Shown here: positions 29,001 to 43,846 of the stretch, piece by piece | How the letters are laid out: each line of letters opens with the position of its first letter | How positions within the stretch are numbered: the stretch's first letter is position 1 | DNA from: Saccostrea echinata | Lineage: Eukaryota | Assembly: GCF_033153115.1 (NCBI RefSeq) | Contig: NW_026889750.1 | Coordinates: forward strand, 31,930,001-31,994,000 | Direction of reading: 5' to 3' | DNA length: 64,000 nucleotides | The notes under the pieces: generated by a model | Told to the model about the DNA's origin: nothing | Database searches by the model: none | What the model saw: the letters and a program-made list of their open reading frames with translations, nothing else | Program-made: the position numbers and the translations under genes

Positions 29001-29734
29001 GAGTACTTGACTATCACTCAACTAAACCCCTAATTATCCCTTTACACTATACCTGTGAAATTGACATCCCTTTATATCTACGCAGATAGTTTAAGGACAA
29101 TTTTCTCAATGCTAGTTCTCCTTTATTCACTAGTCTTGTATTGGAGCCTTCAGTGACTGGAAAGTGGTGCTGTGTACCGACCGTAAGAAGGAAGACAACT
29201 TCCGTAGACTTCTAGAAGCAGGGGGAGCCACTGTTCTTACCATTAAACCACCCTTTCATAAACCTGTGTCAGCCAGTCATGCATTTTTAGAACTGAACAA
29301 AGTGGAAATGTCGGAGGATGATATTTCTACCCTGGTGAGGTCAGGGGTCATATGTATAAAACCCGATTTTATTGCATCTCACCTCACCAACAGTCCACCA
29401 CCAAATCCAGAAGATTTTTGTCCATCAGAGGTCAGAACGCTCTTAAAGAGGTAACTTATTTTTTGGTCTTTGCTTAGAATGATGAATATTCAGTGTTTTT
29501 TAATAGACCATAACTTTCCTTTGGATACATAATGGAAATATTAGTTTGAATAAAAACATTATTAGATTTTATGTAAACTTTTAGAAAAGTTCATGTATTT
29601 GATTGAGATCATATGATGAAATGGTAATAGTACTGAACAGATAAAGGCAGGTTTTTATTTTATTTTTCAACAGTCTCTCTGGAAAGAGGAAACTCTCTTC
29701 ATCAGATGACACTCGTAAAAGACCAAGAAGATGA
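6741..29734 (+). CDS. TOPBP1: DNA topoisomerase II-binding protein 1 (multi-BRCT scaffold, ATR activator), 38 coding exons, about 1647 aa
   Basis: Frame-consistent GT-AG exons: 6741-6833, 6992-7134, 7257-7302, 9521-9607, 10242-10349, 10635-10708, 10860-10987, 11188-11253, 11413-11592, 11911-12095, 12257-12330, 12458-12547, 12799-12921, 13173-13303, 13446-13541, 13671-13775, 13924-14033, 14381-14493, 16824-16883, 18205-18333, 18693-19296, 19500-19613, 20325-20402, 20537-20650, 21598-21744, 22001-22084, 22706-22774, 24328-24609, 25015-25100, 25539-25567, 25757-26079, 26233-26278, 27532-27656, 27769-27862, 28033-28139, 28533-28655, 29134-29450, 29674-29734 (sum 4944 nt). Diagnostic peptides: [45 protein letters not shown]...[16 protein letters not shown]...STHL...[17 protein letters not shown]...[40 protein letters not shown]-terminal KRK...KRPRR. 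Confidence 0.97.
7895..8641. mobile_element. hAT-like non-autonomous element with 6-bp TSD (TOPBP1 intron)
   Basis: ccatat|caggggtagacaaa ... tttgtctagccctg|ccatat. Confidence 0.7.
8688..8982 (-). mobile_element. Degenerate HINE-type element, family C
   Basis: Same ends and (gaca)n microsatellite as 20978-21429. Confidence 0.65.
9362..9505 (+). repeat. 48-bp tandem repeat x3 immediately upstream of TOPBP1 coding exon 4
   Basis: gttcat(t/g)aaggagg recurs at 9373, 9421 and 9469. Confidence 0.9.
15367..16260 (+). mobile_element. HINE-type element family B carrying 166-bp satellite-like units (about 4)
   Basis: ttttagctcacctgagc...gctcaagtgagc 5' end, (gtct)n, internal repeats, 3' ctcaggtgagc plus hairpin ggcccatgggcc. 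Confidence 0.88.
16937..18069 (+). mobile_element. Tc1/mariner-pogo superfamily non-autonomous element
   Basis: TA|ccgtatatactcgcctataagtcgg ... ccgacttataggcgagtatatacag|TA. An internal remnant at 17639 ([10 protein letters not shown]...EFK) resembles a pogo transposase N-terminus. Confidence 0.85.
20978..21429 (-). mobile_element. HINE-type element family C
   Basis: subTIR agtcccctaccgg / ccggtaggggact, hairpin gtattgcattagcaatac, (gac[ag])n microsatellite, two internal repeat units. Confidence 0.8.
22852..24320 (+). mobile_element. HINE-type element family B with about 7 tandem 166-bp satellite monomers
   Basis: gattcaa anchor at 23179, 23345, 23511, 23677, 23843, 24012 and 24177; same termini as 15367-16260. 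Confidence 0.92.
24691..24880. mobile_element. Mariner-type MITE
   Basis: ta|ctgtaaaccaact ... agttggtttacag; a similar degenerate MITE is at about 18447-18662. Confidence 0.65.
26341..27102. mobile_element. hAT non-autonomous element
   Basis: 8-bp TSD cttgtatg on both sides, TIR taggggtgca/tgcaccctta, cgata subterminal repeats. Confidence 0.9.
28193..28378. mobile_element. Tigger/pogo-like MITE
   Basis: cagttgaactttgttatctcaaac ... gtttgagatgatgaggtttgactg|ta imperfect TIRs. Confidence 0.55.
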
Positions 29735-34841: not shown

Positions 34842-36091
34842 TTTTTATGCCCCCGTATCGAAGATTCGGGGGGTATATAGTTTTTGCCCTGTCCATCCGT
34901 CTGTTTGTCCGCAAAAACTTTAACCTTGCCCATAACTTTTGATTGGTTGGAGCTATGGTTTTCATATTTCACATGTGACAAGACCTTTCTTTGAGTACCA
35001 CCATATTTGACCTTGACCTTGGAGTTTGACCCAGTTTTGCAAAATTTTACCAAACTTTAACCTTGGCCATAACTTTTGAGCAATTGATGCTAGGGCTTTC
35101 ATACTTCACATGTGTAATCTTTGTGACAAGACCTTCCTTTGGAACCAACAACTTTGACCTTTTGACCTTGACCTAGGAGGTTGACCTACTTTTGAATAAC
35201 TTTAACCTTGGCCATAACTTTTAAACGGTTGGTGATAGGGCTTTCATACTTCACATGTATAATCCTTGTGACAAGACCTTCCTTTGGATACCAACAACTT
35301 TGACCCTTTGACTTTGACCTTGGACTTTGACCTACTTTTGGAAAACTTTAACCTTGGCCATAACTTTTGAACAGTTTGTGCTAGGGCTTTCATATTTCAC
35401 ATGTGTAATCCTTGTGACAAGACCTTCCTTTGGATACCAACAACTTTGACCCTTTGACCTTGGAATCTGATCTACTTTTGGAAAACTTTAACCTTGCCAT
35501 AACTTTTGAACAATTGGTGCTAGGGCTTTCATATTTCATATGTGTAATCCTTGTGAAAAGGCATTCCTTTGGATACCAACAACTTTGACCCTTTGACTTT
35601 GACCTTGGAGTTTGACCTACTTTTGGAAACTTTAACCTTGGCTATAACTTTTGAATGGTTGGTGCAAGGGCTTTCATACTTCAGATATGTAATCCTTGTG
35701 AGAAGACTTTTTTTTTTGGATACCAACAACTTTGACCCTTTGACTTTGACCTTGGAGTTTGACCTACTTTTGGAAAACTTTAACCTTGGTCATAACTTTT
35801 GAACGATTGGTGCCTCTGCTTTCATATTTCACCTGTGTATTTCTTGGGAGAAGGCCTTTCCTTTGGCACCATTAAAAATGACCATTTGACCTTGATGTTT
35901 GACTTACTTTTGAAAAACTTTAACCTTTTCCATATTTTTTCAATGGTTACTTCTAGGGCTTTCATATAGGTATATTCCTCGGGACAAGACCTTACTTTGG
36001 GTACCAACATATTTGATTTGCATTTGAGAAAGTTTAACCTTTGCTATAAGTTGCCATACGGGGGCATCAGTGTTTCACAAACACATCTTGT
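34842..36091 (+). mobile_element. HINE-type element family D copy 1 (about 8 units of about 145 bp)
   Basis: ttttatgcccccgtatcgaagattcgggg 5' end, tandem aactttaaccttggccataacttt units, 3' acgggggcat plus hairpin gtgtttcacaaacac. Confidence 0.9.
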
Positions 36092-36408
36092 CCTTGTTTT
36101 TTCAGAAATCAGCAATATTTCTCATAGATTTATATTCAAATACGTAACCTGAATAAGGTTTGCGGTGTCAACTAGGATAATTTTGTAAGATTTTGTCACA
36201 ATGTAAAAACTATGTGCAGAATTTTGTATAGAATTATATAGAAACCAAAACAAAGTCACCTATTTTAGCACCAAAGAACACTTACGATTTCTTTATGTTT
36301 TAGAGATTCATTATTCATGTCATTTCTATTCAAAATCAGTCAAAAAATATATATCAATCCATTTGGATTTCACCTGCATCAATTTTTGTTTGTGTTATGT
36401 ATCCTTAA

Positions 36409-36721
36409 GGACAGACGATACAAACTTTATCAAAAATTTTGAAAATAACAACTTTAGTCATGTTTATATAAGTAAAAAGAATAAGTTTAACCGAATAGAT
36501 TTTAATTTTTCATTCACATCTTAACAATAATGGGATTTTAAGTAATAAAAACTTGAATAGAATAAGAATGGTTGCAGACAAGTAGAATTTTAAACACCGT
36601 AGAAAGTTTACAAATTCTTAATAATTTAGAAATTTATTATTCGCATCATTTACAACCAAAATAGGACCAAAAATATATACCAATCCAGGTATCTTTTTTC
36701 TTCTGTTTGTATCATTTGTCC
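36409..36721. mobile_element. TTAA-type (Kolobok-like) MITE
   Basis: ttaa|ggacagacgatacaaac ... gtttgtatcatttgtcc|ttca. Confidence 0.55.
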
Positions 36722-37345
36722 TTCATTAAAGTTTAAATCTGAGCCACACTTCAATCTGCATATACTTTATTTATTTCCAGACAAACAAACAGACATGTTT
36801 ATAACAGAATTCATCGAGGAGAAACACGAAATGTCCTTGTCTAGTAAAATAAATAACCTTGAATTTTTAAAAGAGAATATTGTAAACATCAAAACCGCAA
36901 ATTTTGTCACGTTAAATACCGGTAGTTTTTTTCTCTTTTCTCGTTTACTCACAGAGAGACTGTTTTGTGATAATTCTACTTGTGATTTCCTAGGTTGGGG
37001 TAAACAACCCTCCTTTGGATCAAATAACTTTAAAACGTGTATTTTTAATGCCACTACCATGTAATGGAGCACGTATTATTATGTGTTATTTACAGGTTTA
37101 ACATTGAAATTTGTAAACAGGAAGTTTATGCATAAACATATAAAAGGGGTTTTTTTAAGTAATCATTATATAATGGAACATACTATGTATGCTGCATCAT
37201 CATGTAAATTTCAACAGCTGGACATTTATTTCGTACATGCAAAGCATTATTTGTAGAAGTTGTCGTGTCCAACTGACATTTTATTTATCCTTGCGAAACT
37301 TCAAAGTGAAATAAGTTGAAGAATATTTCGAGACATTTTTAGGAG

Positions 37346-39982
37346 ATGTTTGAAACCATGAAGTATACTGCGTCTCTGCTTGTAATTTTGCTATATATAT
37401 CTGACGTATACACCCAGAATGACAGCATGGCGGTACCCTCCACCACTGCCGCTAACCAAGCTTGCAGCATAGTCATACAAGGCAAGAAAACCAAAGAGGA
37501 CTTTGACAGTCTGTTCAACAAAGACACCAAAAAGATGGTGAAAATCCAATTCAATTTTCAAAACGACACACAAGGACCATTGACAGGATTAGCAGAAACA
37601 AACATTTTTTTACCCTTAACGTGGATAAAAACCAAAGTACTAGAAGCCAGTCAATTACTAATGCTGAAAGAGGAACTCGTTTCTTTTAAATACTCGACAC
37701 TACGTTATGGTGTTGAAAATTTTGCTGTGAGTATTGCAGAAGATCCCGAAAACTGCTTTGCCACAAACAATCTAAATGCAACTCATCTAGAATCCAAACT
37801 GAGGGACCTCGTTCTGAGCAGTTTTGATCCAGATAATACGGGAGCGAGTCCCGAGGGTCACCAAGTATGTAATCAACACATTAAGGATAATGGTCAAGGG
37901 GTAGCGGAGTTCTATTACTTTTGTTGTAATAGAGACGAGGATGGTAATATCGTTTGCTCAGAACTGAAAGAAGATTTTGGACTCCTCGTATTTTTCCGCA
38001 TACTTGTGATTGTTAGCATTGTGGCGTTGTTATATAGTCCCCTTTTAGTGCCGGAACATTGGTATCGTAAGAAATACATAAACTTGAAATTTACTCACAC
38101 ACTTAATGACACGGCTAAGGTCAAGATCTTAAAGACAGCAGATAGCACACATATTCAAAAATCTAAGAATACGATAAGATATAAGGATCTTCTATCCAAT
38201 CCTCATATGCATTTATTCAAAGACGTAGTGACCGATTTGCGGGAGGACCAGGTATATGTGATAACGATGTCCAGACTTTTGTTTAAAATGAAAGCAGATC
38301 ATTTGGTTACGGCTAAATATGTCCCCATTGAAATATTTAGAACTGTATACAAGGCCATATTTAAATGCAAGGTTCGAGATCGAGATGCAGTGAAGAACTG
38401 TTGTTATAGCAATATGTGTTGGCCTTTAAGACCCTGTAAGAGAACTGTAGCGTGGTATAAATGTTTGGAAAATCTCATGTCTCTGCTGCTTCTACCACTT
38501 ATTGCAATACCCTGGGTAATACGACTTTACTTTTATTATGTCTATGAAGACGTTAACAGAAATCTGCGGGACGAGGCGGCAAAGACGCACAATCTTCGCC
38601 CAGATTATCCTGGAAATCTCATGGCTTACCTCACGCCTTCCCATGGAATTTTCCTCTTCTGTTATACTGTGTTCATATTTGACATTTTTCTGTTTCTTAT
38701 TTTACAGAAGAAAGCGGTGGAACGCTCTTCATATGTTATAAGACGATCTTTCCGAGATATGCGTGGCATAAACCGAACCAAGGCCTTTGCATTTTGTATA
38801 AAAATCCTCCTTATCCCAATTAGGAAATGTGGCATTTTCTTTTTGGTGGTTGGCTGGATCTACTTAGTAGTTGCAGTCCCTCTACTGCTGCTGGCTATTG
38901 CCCTTTATTCTATGCCTCTGGTTAACATTATTTGTCGATTTCTGTTTCAGTTCTTGGAAAACAAATTCCCGGAAAAGTGTTCTGATCCCGTAATCAAGTC
39001 ATACGAAGACTTGTATAAGAAGGACTACATAATCCCAAGACCGATATTTGTTGATGATGGGCCACAGAAAGATCCAAGGTCAAATGCGGAGAGACTGGCT
39101 AAATGGCTGATTACTCTGTTGCTCGTTATATCCCTTATCGCCTGGACGGTGTTGGCTTTTGAGTTTATTATTGTGTTCATTGAATATCTTTTCTATCAGC
39201 TAGTTGGACTGGTATTGAATTGGAGTGTATGGAGTCCCTATGTAGCACTGGCTCTTCTTCTGGTTTTCTATGCTAGGAATTCCTTTAGGAGTGTCACCCA
39301 ACGATACCAAAAGTTTAGTGAAAAACTTATAGATTATGTTAACTCAAAAGTAAAGGACGAAGACATAAGAGCTTTAATTAAGAAAGACCCAAAGGACCAA
39401 AGGAATAACGCTTTCCAACTTAATGATGAATGTGACGAAAAACAGGAATTTGAATTATTTGTCCGAGACTCACAACTGGGATGGAAAATGCCTCGAGTGG
39501 TTTTATTCTTAGACATCACCGATATAACTTATATTACTAAGCGCTTTTTCTTTAAAGTTGCCATTATGCTCAATGCTGGATGTCCAGGTAGTCTCACAAT
39601 CAATCTTTTGTCCGCATTATCGAAGTTCATTGTAAATCTCATATTTCTGCTCTTTGTGCTTCTGATCGTTGGAGTGTTCGGCGAGGAAAAAGAGGTGTCC
39701 GGACTTAACCAAGCTCTTTTAGCAACTGTAGCGGGATTCCTGCCATATGTTTTCGAGAGGTATCTTATAAAATATCCTCCAAAATATGATTTGAATACAG
39801 GGAGTCCCATTTTCCAAGTAACTTTTGATGAATTCCTCCAGGATTATAAGGAGACCGCTTTTGTTTCTGACATTGAGGCATTAAGTACAGATGAATGCTC
39901 GGACAAAACACAAATAGATCTTCTGATAGACACGAGTGAAGGAACAACCGGAAATTATCTTTTAAATGCTGATGTTGTGTAA
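37346..39982 (+). CDS. Uncharacterised multi-pass membrane protein, 878 aa, single coding exon
   Basis: 2.6-kb uninterrupted ORF in AT-rich DNA. N-terminal signal peptide (MKYTASLLVILLYISDVYT), Cys-containing ectodomain with N-glycosylation sequons, about 9-10 hydrophobic segments. A ttttag acceptor 3 nt before the ATG suggests a 5' UTR intron. Confidence 0.9.
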   Translation: MFETMKYTASLLVILLYISDVYTQNDSMAVPSTTAANQACSIVIQGKKTKEDFDSLFNKDTKKMVKIQFNFQNDTQGPLTGLAETNIFLPLTWIKTKVLEASQLLMLKEELVSFKYSTLRYGVENFAVSIAEDPENCFATNNLNATHLESKLRDLVLSSFDPDNTGASPEGHQVCNQHIKDNGQGVAEFYYFCCNRDEDGNIVCSELKEDFGLLVFFRILVIVSIVALLYSPLLVPEHWYRKKYINLKFTHTLNDTAKVKILKTADSTHIQKSKNTIRYKDLLSNPHMHLFKDVVTDLREDQVYVITMSRLLFKMKADHLVTAKYVPIEIFRTVYKAIFKCKVRDRDAVKNCCYSNMCWPLRPCKRTVAWYKCLENLMSLLLLPLIAIPWVIRLYFYYVYEDVNRNLRDEAAKTHNLRPDYPGNLMAYLTPSHGIFLFCYTVFIFDIFLFLILQKKAVERSSYVIRRSFRDMRGINRTKAFAFCIKILLIPIRKCGIFFLVVGWIYLVVAVPLLLLAIALYSMPLVNIICRFLFQFLENKFPEKCSDPVIKSYEDLYKKDYIIPRPIFVDDGPQKDPRSNAERLAKWLITLLLVISLIAWTVLAFEFIIVFIEYLFYQLVGLVLNWSVWSPYVALALLLVFYARNSFRSVTQRYQKFSEKLIDYVNSKVKDEDIRALIKKDPKDQRNNAFQLNDECDEKQEFELFVRDSQLGWKMPRVVLFLDITDITYITKRFFFKVAIMLNAGCPGSLTINLLSALSKFIVNLIFLLFVLLIVGVFGEEKEVSGLNQALLATVAGFLPYVFERYLIKYPPKYDLNTGSPIFQVTFDEFLQDYKETAFVSDIEALSTDECSDKTQIDLLIDTSEGTTGNYLLNADVV

Positions 39983-40298
39983 ATATTGCTTTAAGTATAG
40001 GGACAATATAAATTCTCCTTCAATCTTAATCATATTTTATAATTAGCGTTAATTTCTTTTATATAGTTTATATATCATCATTCAATACAAACCTCGAGAG
40101 ACTAATATTAATGGGTGATGCAAAGATCAATAATTTTTTTTTTAAATATTGTTCACGTTTTTTAAAAGTATTTATTTAAAACTTCTGGTCGGCTGAAAGG
40201 TACGTCGTGAACGGAATGTTCTGTCTGTAATATTCTCCAGAAATTCGTATAACAGTTCCCAGTCCAACATCATCAGAGGTATTTGGTTTTCCATTAAA

Positions 40299-41208
40299 AA
40301 ACAAGATGTGTTTGTGAAACACTGATATGGCAACTTATAGCGAATGTTAAACTTTCTCAAATAATGCAAATCAAATACTTTGGTACCAAAGTAAGGTCTT
40401 GTCTCGAGGAATATACCTGTGAAATATGAAAGCCCTAGCAGCAGCCATTGAATAGATATGGAAAAGGTTAAAGTTTTTCAAAAGTAAGCCAAAAATCAAG
40501 GTCAAAATCAATGGTGCCCAAGGAAAGGCCTTCTCACAAGAAATACACCTGTGAAATATGAAAGCCCTGGTACTCACCTTTCAAAAATTATGGCATAGGT
40601 TAAAGTTTTTATTAAAGTGGGTCAAACTCCAAGGTCAAGGTCAAAAATATTTGTACCCAAGGAATACACATGTGAAGTATGAAAGCCCTAGCACTAATCG
40701 TTCAAAATTATGTTAAAGTTTTGGTAAAATTTTGCAAAAGTGGGTCAAGCTTTTCTTGTGACAAGATCTCTCCTTGGGTACCAACAATTTTGACTCTAAC
40801 CTTGTTTGACCCACTTTTCAAAAAAACTTTTACCATAATTTTTAAACAGTTGGTGCAAGGGCTTTCGTATTTCACAGGTGTATTTCTTGTGACACCTTCC
40901 CTTGGCAAAATACAAGGAATACACTTGTGAAGTATGAAAGCCCTAGCACCAATCGTTCAAAAATTATGGCCAAGGTTATGCAAAAAGTGGGTCAAACTCC
41001 AAGGTCAAGATCAAGGTGTCAAATATGTTGATACCCAGACTAAGGTCTTGTCACAAGGAATGCACATGTGAAATATGAAAGCCATAGCTCCAACCAATCA
41101 AAAGTTATGGGCAAAGTTAAAGTTTTTGCGGACAAACAGACAGACAGAAATAAGGACGGACAGGGCAAAAATATATGCCTCCGAATCTTCGGTCACTGGG
41201 GCATAAAA
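40299..41208 (-). mobile_element. HINE-type element family D copy 2 (inverted, internally rearranged)
   Basis: Ends are the reverse complement of those at 34842-36091; a short internal inversion lies at about 40750-40900. Confidence 0.85.
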
Positions 41209-41907
41209 AAGACAGAAGAAGAAAAGCATATACAGGTATAGGGCTAAGGCAAAGAAAGAGATCACACACGAAACGGGCATGGAATTTATGTACTGTTTCT
41301 GTGGATACAGCTCATGAAGTTAACAAACAGTGTTCTTTCTTGGTTTCTATAACAGCCAAAATCTTGTACAAGTCATATTCTAAACTTGTATAAGTGAGTG
41401 GCTCAGAATAGTTTTTTAAACTACTGGGTTTGTTTATAGATTAGACAAAATCAGGAACATAAGCAACTGATACCACGAACACTACCGTTTCAGACTGCAA
41501 CTTTCAGTGCAAATAAAATGCACAATTCTTTTCATTGCCAATGACCATGGTCATAACTTATAACGAAAAATAAAACAGAATAAAGAACAAGCATTGAAAA
41601 GTATGGGCTTTAAAAATGCAGTCACATGGTGCGTGGTCATAAATGAACTTTCATTTTTTTGTGTATATAATGTTTTTTTTTTCATCAATATTGTTTCTTG
41701 GCTTCTTTGAGAGCCCAAGACTCGAACAAGTCACATTCTGAACTTATATGGATGAGTGACTCAAAACTTTAGTAATCTACTGGGTCTGTCTATAAAATAA
41801 ACCACACCAGGGATATTAGCAAATGGTACCACGAACACTACCGTTTCAGACTGTGACTTGAATGCATATTTACAAAAGAAAAATAAGACTATAACGGTAT
41901 GAACAAT

Positions 41908-43846
41908 AACTAGAGTGTTCTAAGGAACGCATATGTCGCCTGCTTTGTAGCTTCATTAAAGATGTGAATAAATCTAAGAGTGGTTAGCTTTTTATTTACT
42001 ATTAGCATTGTAGTGCATGCATTTGCCTGCAAAGAGAAAATGGCATCCATGGATAGTATAAGACTGCGATAGAATCTGACAATCAAAGAAAATATGGTTC
42101 CCTAACCCTCAAATGAATAATTAAATTGAAATTATTGGAAATAACTATTTATCATTTTATTAATACGTGACTCCAACAATCCTTCAAAAGAGATTTCAGT
42201 ACGTCTTAACTGCAATTGTCAGTCTACACCATCCATTGTGGAATACCAATCCCAATGTATTTTCATAGTATTTAAATATAAGTTTGTGTGGTAACTGAAT
42301 ATCATACAGTTTCAAAGTAATGTATCATGAGCTCAACGTGTTTCAAACAATCCTCCAAAAGAGATTTCAGTTTGTCTTTACTGCAATTGTCAGTCCACAC
42401 GATCAACTGTGGAATACCGATCTCAATGTATTTTCATAGTATTTAAATATAAGTTTGTGTGGTAACTGAATATCATACTATTTCAAAGTATAGTATCATG
42501 AGCTCATAAACATGTATAAATGCTAATTATCAAAATTTCAAAAGACAAAGGTTAAAATTAACTGTCCGGGGTATTTATTGCAAAGTAGGTCAAAGGTCAA
42601 GGTCAAGTGGATTGTAATGCTGGTATTTTTCATATTGTCTTATGACAAACAGTGCACATGCTAAACAGCGTAGACTTACCTCTTAAATGTCAAAAATATG
42701 CTGTACATCGGCACTTTGAACTATTTTGTAAAGTAGGTGAAAGGTCAAGGGTCACGAGGTTGGTAACCATGGAAATTTACAAAAGCCATAGTGCCAAGCA
42801 ATATATGTGCACAATACCTTCAAGATCTACTAAAACCTTGTATTCCACCCCACACCCCATATTCCTTAAGAAACAATGATGGTCTTACTTTTCTTATTCC
42901 CCAAACTAGGACCACATCATATATGAATAGTTATTTCCCGCCTACAATTAAACTATGGAATAATTTACCATATCATATTAGAAATTTACCAACTCTATCT
43001 TCATTCACTAATGCCATTAAAAAGGCTCATTACAGAACTCCCAATAAGCTTTTTAATCATGGAAATCGTAGTCAAAATATTATTCATTGTCAATTAAGAA
43101 ATAATGCTAGTAGTTTAAATGCTGATTTACAGAAAGATTATATAATTGAAAGTTCCAAATGTGAAAACTGTGGGTTTTCATACTGAAAATGCATATCATT
43201 TTTTCTTAGAGTGTCCATGTTATGTCGAGCAAAGAAATACTCTTTTTAATTGTATATCTAGTATAGACCTGCAACATCCTGTATCTCTATATCTATTGTT
43301 ATTTGGTGATAGTAATATTCCTTATGCAAAAAATAGGAAATTGTCTGATTGTGTTCATAAATATATTTAACAAACCAAGAGGTTTCATAAATGATGTGAA
43401 ATTAAGAAATATTTGTTTCTTGTTTAAATCAAATACACATTCATTGTATTTTATATAAATTGCTGTAATTCCCATTTTTCAGTTTTTTTCTCTCATTTTC
43501 ACATAAACCGGTATTCATTTGGTTTTTTTTCTCCACTGTTATTTATTTATTTATTTTTTATTTTCTCCGAAATTTCATTCAATTTTGTGTTACTTAACTA
43601 TAACTTATTGGTGATATGAACCTGTATTTATATGTAGTAATATGTATATTTTAATTAACCTTGTACCTGTGGAGAAGGCTTATATAGGCTATGCCTGCTG
43701 CCCAATCCAGTTATGTATTTATTACATAATAAAATATGTTCAAAACAGTTCTCCAGATACAGGATGTGACAGATTGATAGACAGACAGACAGACGCCGGG
43801 TAAAGTGATCCCTAAGTGCCGCTCTGCTCTGCAGGCGACACAAAAA
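41908..43846 (-). mobile_element. HINE-type element containing a nested LINE fragment and a tandem duplication of about 172 bp
   Basis: subTIR tgtcgcctgc (41935) / gcaggcgaca (43830), (gaca)n at 43780, duplicated block 42173-42335 / 42345-42506. Confidence 0.65.
42815..43745 (+). mobile_element. 5'-truncated CR1/L2-group LINE (ORF2 C-terminus plus 3' UTR), frameshifted
   Basis: PYSLRN...RTTSYMNSYFPPTIKLWNNLP...IIHCQLRNNASSLN...C ENCG/ENAYHFFLECPCY, split over two frames; 3' UTR ends with aataaaa. Confidence 0.85.

Follow-up and report, generated by a model that had tools for sequence, protein, structure and literature searches.

What kind of protein is encoded by the longest reading frame in a stretch of 64,000 nucleotides from the oyster Saccostrea echinata (contig NW_026889750.1, positions 31,930,001 to 31,994,000; the whole stretch is called the window below), and which characterised proteins, if any, is it related to? 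This frame, a single uninterrupted open reading frame (ORF) from ATG to stop at 37346..39982 of the forward strand, encodes 878 amino acids (aa) and is the sole ORF of more than 400 aa found in a scan of the window. An earlier note on this DNA had described its product as an orphan membrane protein of an undescribed receptor or channel family, possibly a ligand-sensing channel or an immune or chemosensory receptor. The gene is an unexceptional member of an already catalogued family. Judged by sequence and predicted structure, this family is remote from all the kinds of characterised protein that were tested. The novelty lies in the absence of functional or structural relatives and not in the sequences themselves, which databases already list.

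Members and distribution of the family

The protein proved to be no orphan, since a six-frame search of its own genome returned 24 matches and an exhaustive search of 1.84 billion representative sequences returned 390 homologues with an expect value (E) of at most 0.001, of which 301 have E<=1e-10 and 184 have E<=1e-30. Among the best 150 of these 390 representatives, the set that was inspected (the weakest 240 never were), most members are 850-1100 aa long and align from end to end. Eight close public homologues were found at 53-58% identity, one of them a 78% fragment. The precomputed Pfam tag PF28478 is carried by seven of these eight and by the annelid member P0118, which indirectly supports the assignment of the S. 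echinata protein to the tagged family; the untagged entry, P0005, is a 621-aa fragment. The seven tagged proteins are 53-58% identical to the S. echinata protein over 92-100% of the query (E 0 to 1e-296). Full-length homology at 53-58% identity is likewise seen with the Magallana gigas set (e.g., K1S6K8 and A0A8W8INV4), and at 19-38% identity (E 1e-186 to ~1e-40) there follow Mya arenaria LOC128203536, Biomphalaria glabrata LOC106061662, Lingula anatina LOC106180515, and Liolophura sinensis LOC135475228. The uncharacterised entries of the family share the Cys pattern and the motifs of the oyster protein and show no difference in kind from it.

Names were examined for 30 representatives, all of them designated as "uncharacterized", "hypothetical", or "unnamed protein product". 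Nine of the 30 carry an organism name and 21 do not, so the taxonomic range may be wider than it seems. The named members comprise bivalves (Mya arenaria, Potamilus streckersoni, and Mercenaria mercenaria), gastropods (Biomphalaria glabrata and B. pfeifferi), the chiton Liolophura sinensis, the annelid Owenia fusiformis with three clusters, and the brachiopod Lingula anatina; including two Magallana gigas entries, all 11 organism-named clusters are lophotrochozoan. In a FastTree phylogeny whose supports were not inspected, the paralogue L002 groups with the Magallana proteins in one clade, and the present protein branches just outside it. This tree was built from the 128 of 157 fetched representatives that reach at least 750 aa (29 shorter ones being dropped), which also served for the C-terminus counts given below, and from nine ORFs of the own genome, the broken copy L010 being left out. 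Further homologue searches with the family alignment and with an annelid member added nothing beyond the known set. No literature on the family was found under PF28478, under member accessions and locus names, or under keywords at the level of titles and abstracts, and supplementary gene lists could mention individual loci. The description as an undescribed family holds for function, for which no account was found, but not for the sequences, which databases hold as "uncharacterized protein" entries and under the tag PF28478.

Within S. echinata, the 24 matches were grouped into about 11 uninterrupted full-length frames (880-1032 aa). Besides the present gene, these comprise a copy with 60% identity on its own contig, at a distance of 10.9 Mb; contig C29 has four in a cluster of 290 kb, and C52, C47, C56, C45, and C2 have one each. 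About five further copies are interrupted by stop codons (TAG, TAA, or TGA) or fragmentary, and all but one of these lie in the C29 cluster (42.58-42.87 Mb; L003, L004, L005, L010, and others), where the copies are arranged in tandem and some are scattered into pieces. This pattern is that of a birth-and-death tandem family. The intact copies of the own genome remain single ORFs even across deep clades, so the intronless state is old and not the result of a recent retrocopy event. In the gastropod B. glabrata, LOC106061662 (cluster P0150) is represented by four isoforms of 1017, 1016, 969, and 968 aa; this member is therefore apparently spliced within the coding region, unlike the single-ORF copies of the oyster.

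Searches for characterised relatives

A set of Pfam-A models that does not contain PF28478 gave no match for this protein (best E 0.19), and over 52 members of the family alignment the only match at E<=0.01 was one spurious Amj hit. NCBIfam gave no match, and the best PHROGs value was E 0.12. A search of the Protein Data Bank (PDB) by sequence gave no match, and by profile its best rows were phospholamban (E 0.0097) and MsbA (E 0.08), which are hydrophobic noise. The ESM Atlas returned no usable match for this protein or for the family member P0007.

Structural comparison gave a similar picture. A Foldseek search with the whole model against 350,542 PDB chains reached a best E of 0.13 at a TM-score of 0.05, the best value against the BFVD viral structures was E 0.28, and VIA-align, in its wide mode and at a second look, found no look-alike of the whole model. 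The ectodomain alone, run through Foldseek and the wide mode of VIA-align, had no look-alike among solved structures either. Neither in sequence nor in predicted fold does the family show detectable similarity to any characterised family.

The earlier note had recognised no signature of GPCR (G-protein-coupled receptor), MFS, ABC, Cys-loop, DEG/ENaC, TRP, or innexin proteins, and this holds after the sequence and structure searches. For GPCRs, none of the 52 members matches the Pfam models 7tm_1, 7tm_2, 7tm_3, or Frizzled, and similarity to the seven-helix fold was not found. TMEM16, OSCA-TMEM63, and TMC proteins gave no Pfam match and do not occur among the structure matches listed. These families, as well as STRA6, otopetrin, CALHM, and GPCRs, are also multi-pass helical proteins of comparable size, some of them with cytoplasmic inserts that contain beta structure. 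The nearest known architecture is that of SID-1/SIDT, with a leader, an ectodomain, a first transmembrane helix (TM1), a cytosolic domain, and many helices. The order of parts is the same as in the oyster protein, and a relationship is unsupported by sequence or fold: searches found no Pfam SID-1 match, no fold similarity above noise, and none of the conserved metal-binding His residues of that family.

Conserved residues and predicted topology

The AlphaFold2 model, computed with the 52-sequence alignment, is confident (mean pLDDT, the per-residue confidence score, 85.9; pTM, the score for the overall fold, 0.79), and the regions that it delimits are given in Table 1. The hydrophobic leader at the N-terminus, which the earlier note had taken for a signal peptide, is present and remains a putative one, and a hydrophobic stretch precedes the first conserved Cys in 92 of the 118 family members with an aligned N-terminus. 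Also borne out are the six Cys residues of the first 210 residues (C40, C137, C175, C193, C194, and C204), the sequons NDS25, NDT73, and NAT144, and the long basic loop after TM1, which has 144 residues, 28 of them Lys or Arg, and a net charge of +16. The Cys cluster at the end of this loop (Cys 341, 352, 353, 358, 364, and 373), the GCPG motif at residues 745-748, and the terminal DVV were found as described. The claim of eight to nine further hydrophobic segments after TM1 stands in part: six are clear at a hydropathy threshold of 1.5 and two more appear only as the AlphaFold helices 524-540 and 786-807. There are, then, seven clear hydropathy segments in all, to which AlphaFold adds these two short or kinked ones, R531 being situated in the short helix 524-540. 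The total would be nine helices if both cross the membrane, and in the model the kinked segment after TM8 could be either TM9 or re-entrant.

Orientation in the membrane was assessed with family-wide statistics from 137 sequences. Per 100 aa, the ectodomain has 1.55 sequons, as compared with 0.49-0.67 for the five loops that are putatively inner or short and 0.97 for the C-terminal tail. Lys and Arg make up 15.7-17.0% of the TM1-2, TM3-4, and TM5-6 loops, where the net charge is positive (in the region 230-373, 15.7% with a net +9.0 per sequence), and the N-terminal domain is acidic. The positive-inside charge of this protein and the family statistics concur on a topology in which the ectodomain would lie outside the cell or in a lumen, with three probable disulfides and N-glycans, while the basic and beta-rich regions and the C-terminus would be cytoplasmic, so that roughly half of the protein or more would face the cytoplasm. 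The product is a multi-pass membrane protein with predicted N-glycans.

Conservation was scored on the 52-sequence alignment, in which residues were listed from 75% upwards. The six Cys residues of the ectodomain are conserved at 96-100%; in the cluster that follows the basic loop, C341, C352, and C353 reach 94-98%, with C358, C364, and C373 below 75%. In the GCPG motif, P747 is conserved at 98% and G748 at 94%. Residues C40, C137, C175, C193, P524, Y642, G797, and P800 are invariant. The conserved polar or charged residues within the predicted membrane helices are R393 (93%), R531 (85%), E606 (90%), E613 (78%), N625 (88%), N788 (77%), and Q789 (85%). The two glutamates stand one heptad apart in TM6, and the segment after TM8 with N788, Q789, G797, and P800 is conserved at 77-100%.

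Selection on the family

Ratios of non-synonymous to synonymous substitution rates (dN/dS) were estimated by the NG86 method between paralogues of the own genome and are reported for the 7 of 36 pairs with more than 40% aa identity. In five of the seven, dN/dS is 0.085-0.178, and in the other two dS is saturated. The present gene and its closest paralogue (L001-L002) gave 0.138 at a dS of 1.97, L004-L005 gave 0.178 at 0.88, L006-L009 gave 0.135 at 0.98, and the remaining unsaturated pairs gave 0.085 and 0.112. Several dS values are high and the ratios are rough, yet all are far below 1, and the paralogues of the family are under long-term purifying selection. When the ratio (omega) is taken by segment, the TM8-9 segment is the slowest-evolving one (0.02-0.06 in three of four pairs, dS being saturated in L001-L002). 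For the ectodomain, omega is 0.09-0.19, a rate no higher than that of the other regions; a fast-evolving ectodomain is hereby rejected, and evolutionary rates give no support to the idea of a chemosensory or immune receptor.

The C-terminus of the family

The ending D-V-V had suggested a class III PDZ ligand, that is, D or E followed by any residue and a hydrophobic one at the C-terminus. The oyster protein does end in this way, but the D-x-V ending is particular to it: D does not occur at position -2 in any of the 83 family members that end in V, I, or L, where T (13), S (12), and E (11) are the commonest. These 83 members are counted among the 128 full-length representatives (53 of them ending in V) against a background of 26.5% (binomial p ~1e-19), and four of the nine intact ORFs of the own genome end in V. 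The family trait is a hydrophobic C-terminal residue and not a PDZ class. PDZ binding and ER (endoplasmic reticulum) export through a C-terminal valine are recognised roles of such ends, and the family trait would fit either of them.

The gene and its transcript-like coverage

Five sequencing runs, which come from two studies, contain 96-100% of the sampled words of the ORF, and four of them (X1-X4) were aligned to positions 35500-41400 of the window. In all four, the whole ORF is covered by one or two long contigs (Table 1) with an identity of at least 99% and with at most four letters per contig that differ from the window. Contigs and DNA run colinearly, without a joint inside the ORF in any of the four runs, which supports the description of the gene as an intact, intronless, single exon. 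All four runs have zero depth over unique DNA at 36879-37075, and depth is low or zero from 36288 onward. Their assemblies total only 48-75 million letters as compared with the 923 Mb of the genome. Since this coverage pattern is unlike that of uniform genomic DNA and the assemblies are small, the runs are taken as transcript data, and they are read as showing, without proving it, that the gene is transcribed and unspliced.

At the 5' side, the contigs begin 36-49 nt downstream of the end of a TATA-like box, TATAAAAG, in the four runs (37181, 37191, 37192, and 37194). One X2 contig has 148 foreign letters ahead of 37191, while those of X1, X3, and X4 start directly at 37181-37194. The first 30 of the foreign letters are absent from the window and 37191 is not preceded by an AG acceptor; a spliced exon of the 5' untranslated region was rejected on these grounds. 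The letters are probably a chimeric join, the alternative being a distant non-coding leader exon outside the window. The 3' end of the transcript-like unit is undefined because the contigs break at a run of T near 40131-40146 with repeats beyond it. The window is AT-rich, and the 2-kb bin of the gene has its highest G+C content (38.5%, as compared with 29-38% in other bins).

What the protein may do

The reading of the earlier note would have been contradicted by a confident match to a characterised family or a transposon protein, or by a lack of expression and of purifying selection; the searches gave no confident match to either kind of protein, coverage is transcript-like, and the paralogues are under purifying selection. 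In the predicted layout, a signal peptide is followed by an ectodomain of 190 residues, TM1, a basic cytoplasmic region rich in beta structure, and eight more helices, two of which may be re-entrant. The favoured but tentative reading of the mechanism, given clearly less than even confidence, is that ions or small solutes pass through the membrane core along a path regulated by the ectodomain and the cytoplasmic parts. A conducting path is suggested because conservation is strongest in the membrane, because TM6 carries a glutamate pair and two conserved arginines lie in other helices, and because of the polar segment after TM8. The path would be lined by E606 and E613 on one face of TM6 and by R393 and R531, with the near-invariant polar Gly/Pro stretch that follows TM8 in the role of a pore loop. 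Conduction may be regulated by the ectodomain and a composite cytoplasmic domain, and the C-terminal Val, Ile, or Leu could serve PDZ scaffolding or ER export. In its widest form, the proposal is that of a new structural class of channels or transporter-like receptors, so far from Lophotrochozoa only, with an ectodomain and a nine-helix core unlike solved proteins and with a path for ions or small solutes lined by the TM6 glutamates and the segment after TM8; as a whole, it is possible but on balance unlikely.

Several observations count against a conducting path or against its premises. Conduction itself is shown by nothing in this analysis, and Glu/Arg pairs buried in a membrane may have no more than a structural role and are known from enzymes and receptors as well. 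No internal pseudo-symmetry was detected, the hhalign probability being at most 5.4% in all 12 comparisons, and an internal repeat is rejected on the same figures. The membrane core was compared only within the whole model, so that the absence of a known fold was properly tested for the ectodomain alone, which could, moreover, be luminal in an organelle. The runs carry the label "RNA?" only as a guess. Lastly, the ORF differences between contigs and window comprise five non-synonymous changes, all conservative (A101V, A139T, D210N, V221L, and D347N), and two synonymous ones, which alone show no constraint on this copy; seven differences are too small a sample for a test, though under constraint a lower ratio would be expected.

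The conducting path has to be weighed, to begin with, against a non-conducting receptor for signalling or adhesion, in which the disulfide-bonded ectodomain would bind an extracellular ligand or partner, the bundle would relay the signal to the cytoplasmic beta-rich domain, and a PDZ protein would hold the C-terminus. The conserved and predicted-glycosylated ectodomain with its six near-invariant Cys residues, the predicted cytoplasmic position of most of the mass, and the family-wide C-terminal V, I, or L all suit such a receptor, as do tandem arrays with dead copies, which are common in receptor families. None of the 52 members has a known signalling domain, however, the slow ectodomain is unlike that of typical chemosensory or immune expansions, and conservation peaks in the membrane (TM8-9 and TM6-7), which a mere anchor would not need. 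We consider this receptor rather improbable, though of some weight.

A membrane-embedded enzyme, or a protein that handles lipids or solutes in the secretory or endolysosomal pathway, is a further and unlikely alternative. The SID-1/SIDT-like order of parts is a point of comparison for this alternative. The N-terminal domain would then be luminal, and the candidate active or binding site would be the polar cluster R393, Y397, E401, H433, Y440, N625, N788, and Q789 near the outer leaflet. Apart from the two explanations treated below, what remains of the probability is assigned to something else.

Mobile-element context

It is very improbable that a mobile element or virus carries the gene as cargo or was the source from which it was domesticated. 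This origin is brought to mind by inverted arrays with a period of ~145 bp that bracket the gene at 35022-36091 and 40369-41127, and by a gene that is both intronless and multi-copy. The bracketing repeat, nevertheless, occurs throughout the genome, where a first look gave 2,642 candidates and 40 of them were scored. It is shared by none of the eight other paralogue loci, similarity between flanks being confined to L001 in a comparison of nine paralogue loci with flanks of 1.2-1.5 kb, from which L010 was left out. Nearby ORFs of at least 130 aa gave no match to a transposase, a reverse transcriptase, or an integrase, and no relative was found among viral structures (BFVD, best E 0.28) or in PHROGs (best E 0.12). 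The family, moreover, is deep and diverse, is under purifying selection, and spans three phyla. A transposon-carried gene is rejected on the genome-wide occurrence of the repeat, the dissimilar flanks of the paralogues, and the lack of transposable-element domains in the neighbours.

The arms of the ~145 bp repeat are oppositely oriented and 72-92% complementary, and they reach a depth of up to ~17,000 in the transcript-like runs. Forty-two matches to the repeat are listed, 40 of them full-length at 91-100% identity (one being the query) and two partial at 75-78%. An ORF of 131 aa at 42791-43186 (+) has no Pfam match and may resemble the C-terminal tail of ORF2 of retrotransposons without long terminal repeats.

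A chance ORF or a decaying pseudogene is hardly credible, for although the contig differences run at five non-synonymous to two synonymous and the family does have dead copies, a chance ORF is refuted by 878 stop-free codons in DNA of 33-38% G+C, by family-invariant residues that are all kept, by transcript-like coverage in two studies, and by the dN/dS of 0.138 against the closest paralogue, to which the confident fold may be added.

Features of the gene and neighbouring ORFs

Table 1. Gene, protein regions, and transcript-like contigs, in positions of the window (TM, transmembrane helix).
Feature	Position	Strand	Remarks
Coding sequence	37346..39982	+	878 codons and stop, single exon
TATA-like box TATAAAAG	37138..37145	+	read from the sequence; putative core promoter
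Residues 1-23, signal-peptide-like leader	37346..37414	+	hydrophobic helix 2-22, low pLDDT
Residues 24-210, predicted extracellular or luminal alpha/beta domain	37415..37975	+	six conserved Cys, three sequons
Residues 211-229, TM1	37976..38032	+	hydropathy 2.83; AlphaFold helix 211-229
Residues 230-373, basic region, predicted cytoplasmic	38033..38464	+	long beta-hairpins 246-264 and 302-316; conserved C341, C352, C353, W370
Residues 374-540, TM2-TM5	38465..38965	+	R393, E401, H433, Y440 near outer face; invariant P524
Residues 541-589, poorly conserved loop, putatively cytoplasmic	38966..39112	+	pLDDT 48-70; column conservation 0.19-0.20
Residues 590-645, TM6-TM7 hairpin	39113..39280	+	E606 and E613 seven residues apart; G621, N625; invariant Y642
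Residues 646-754	39281..39607	+	putative cytoplasmic helix extension, beta-rich insert 688-731, conserved G-x-P-G 745-748
Residues 755-807, TM8 and kinked polar Gly/Pro segment	39608..39766	+	conserved S785, N788, Q789, G797, P800
Residues 808-878, acidic C-terminal tail	39767..39979	+	beta-hairpin 835-862; conserved D842; ends -DVV
Contig X1	37181-40325	+	transcript-like; longest span
Contigs X2	37191-39552 and 39554-40142	+	transcript-like; two contigs
Contig X3	37194-40029	+	transcript-like
Contig X4	37192-40143	+	transcript-like
ORF differences, non-synonymous	37647, 37760, 37973, 38006, 38384		each in one run only
ORF differences, synonymous	37606, 38791		each in one run only

Two other ORFs of the window deserve mention. 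A single ORF of 400 aa at 58877-60079 (-) matches the hormone-receptor domain HRM (E 2.8e-13) and the secretin-family 7TM domain 7tm_2 (E 1.5e-13). Situated 19 kb downstream, this secretin-family GPCR is thus another gene for a membrane protein that apparently lacks introns. Upstream, an ORF of 96 aa at 29164-29454 (+) has a sub-threshold likeness to the BRCT domains of TopBP1/SLF1 (E 0.006, 17 bits as compared with a cut-off of 27) and possibly belongs, as one of several exons, to a gene nearby.

Significance

Much of animal diversity is found among molluscs, annelids, and brachiopods, and these groups possess many lineage-specific genes without known function. To be uncharacterised does not yet make a family a new system, and the function of this one is uncharacterised rather than shown to be new. 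The family is, nonetheless, large and expressed, is old enough to be shared by three phyla or more, is under constraint, and can be folded with confidence, yet sequence profiles and structure searches link it to no characterised protein. If its members are truly channels, transporters, or receptors, they would represent a new fold class and a new physiological component in oysters and in other cultured or ecologically important species.

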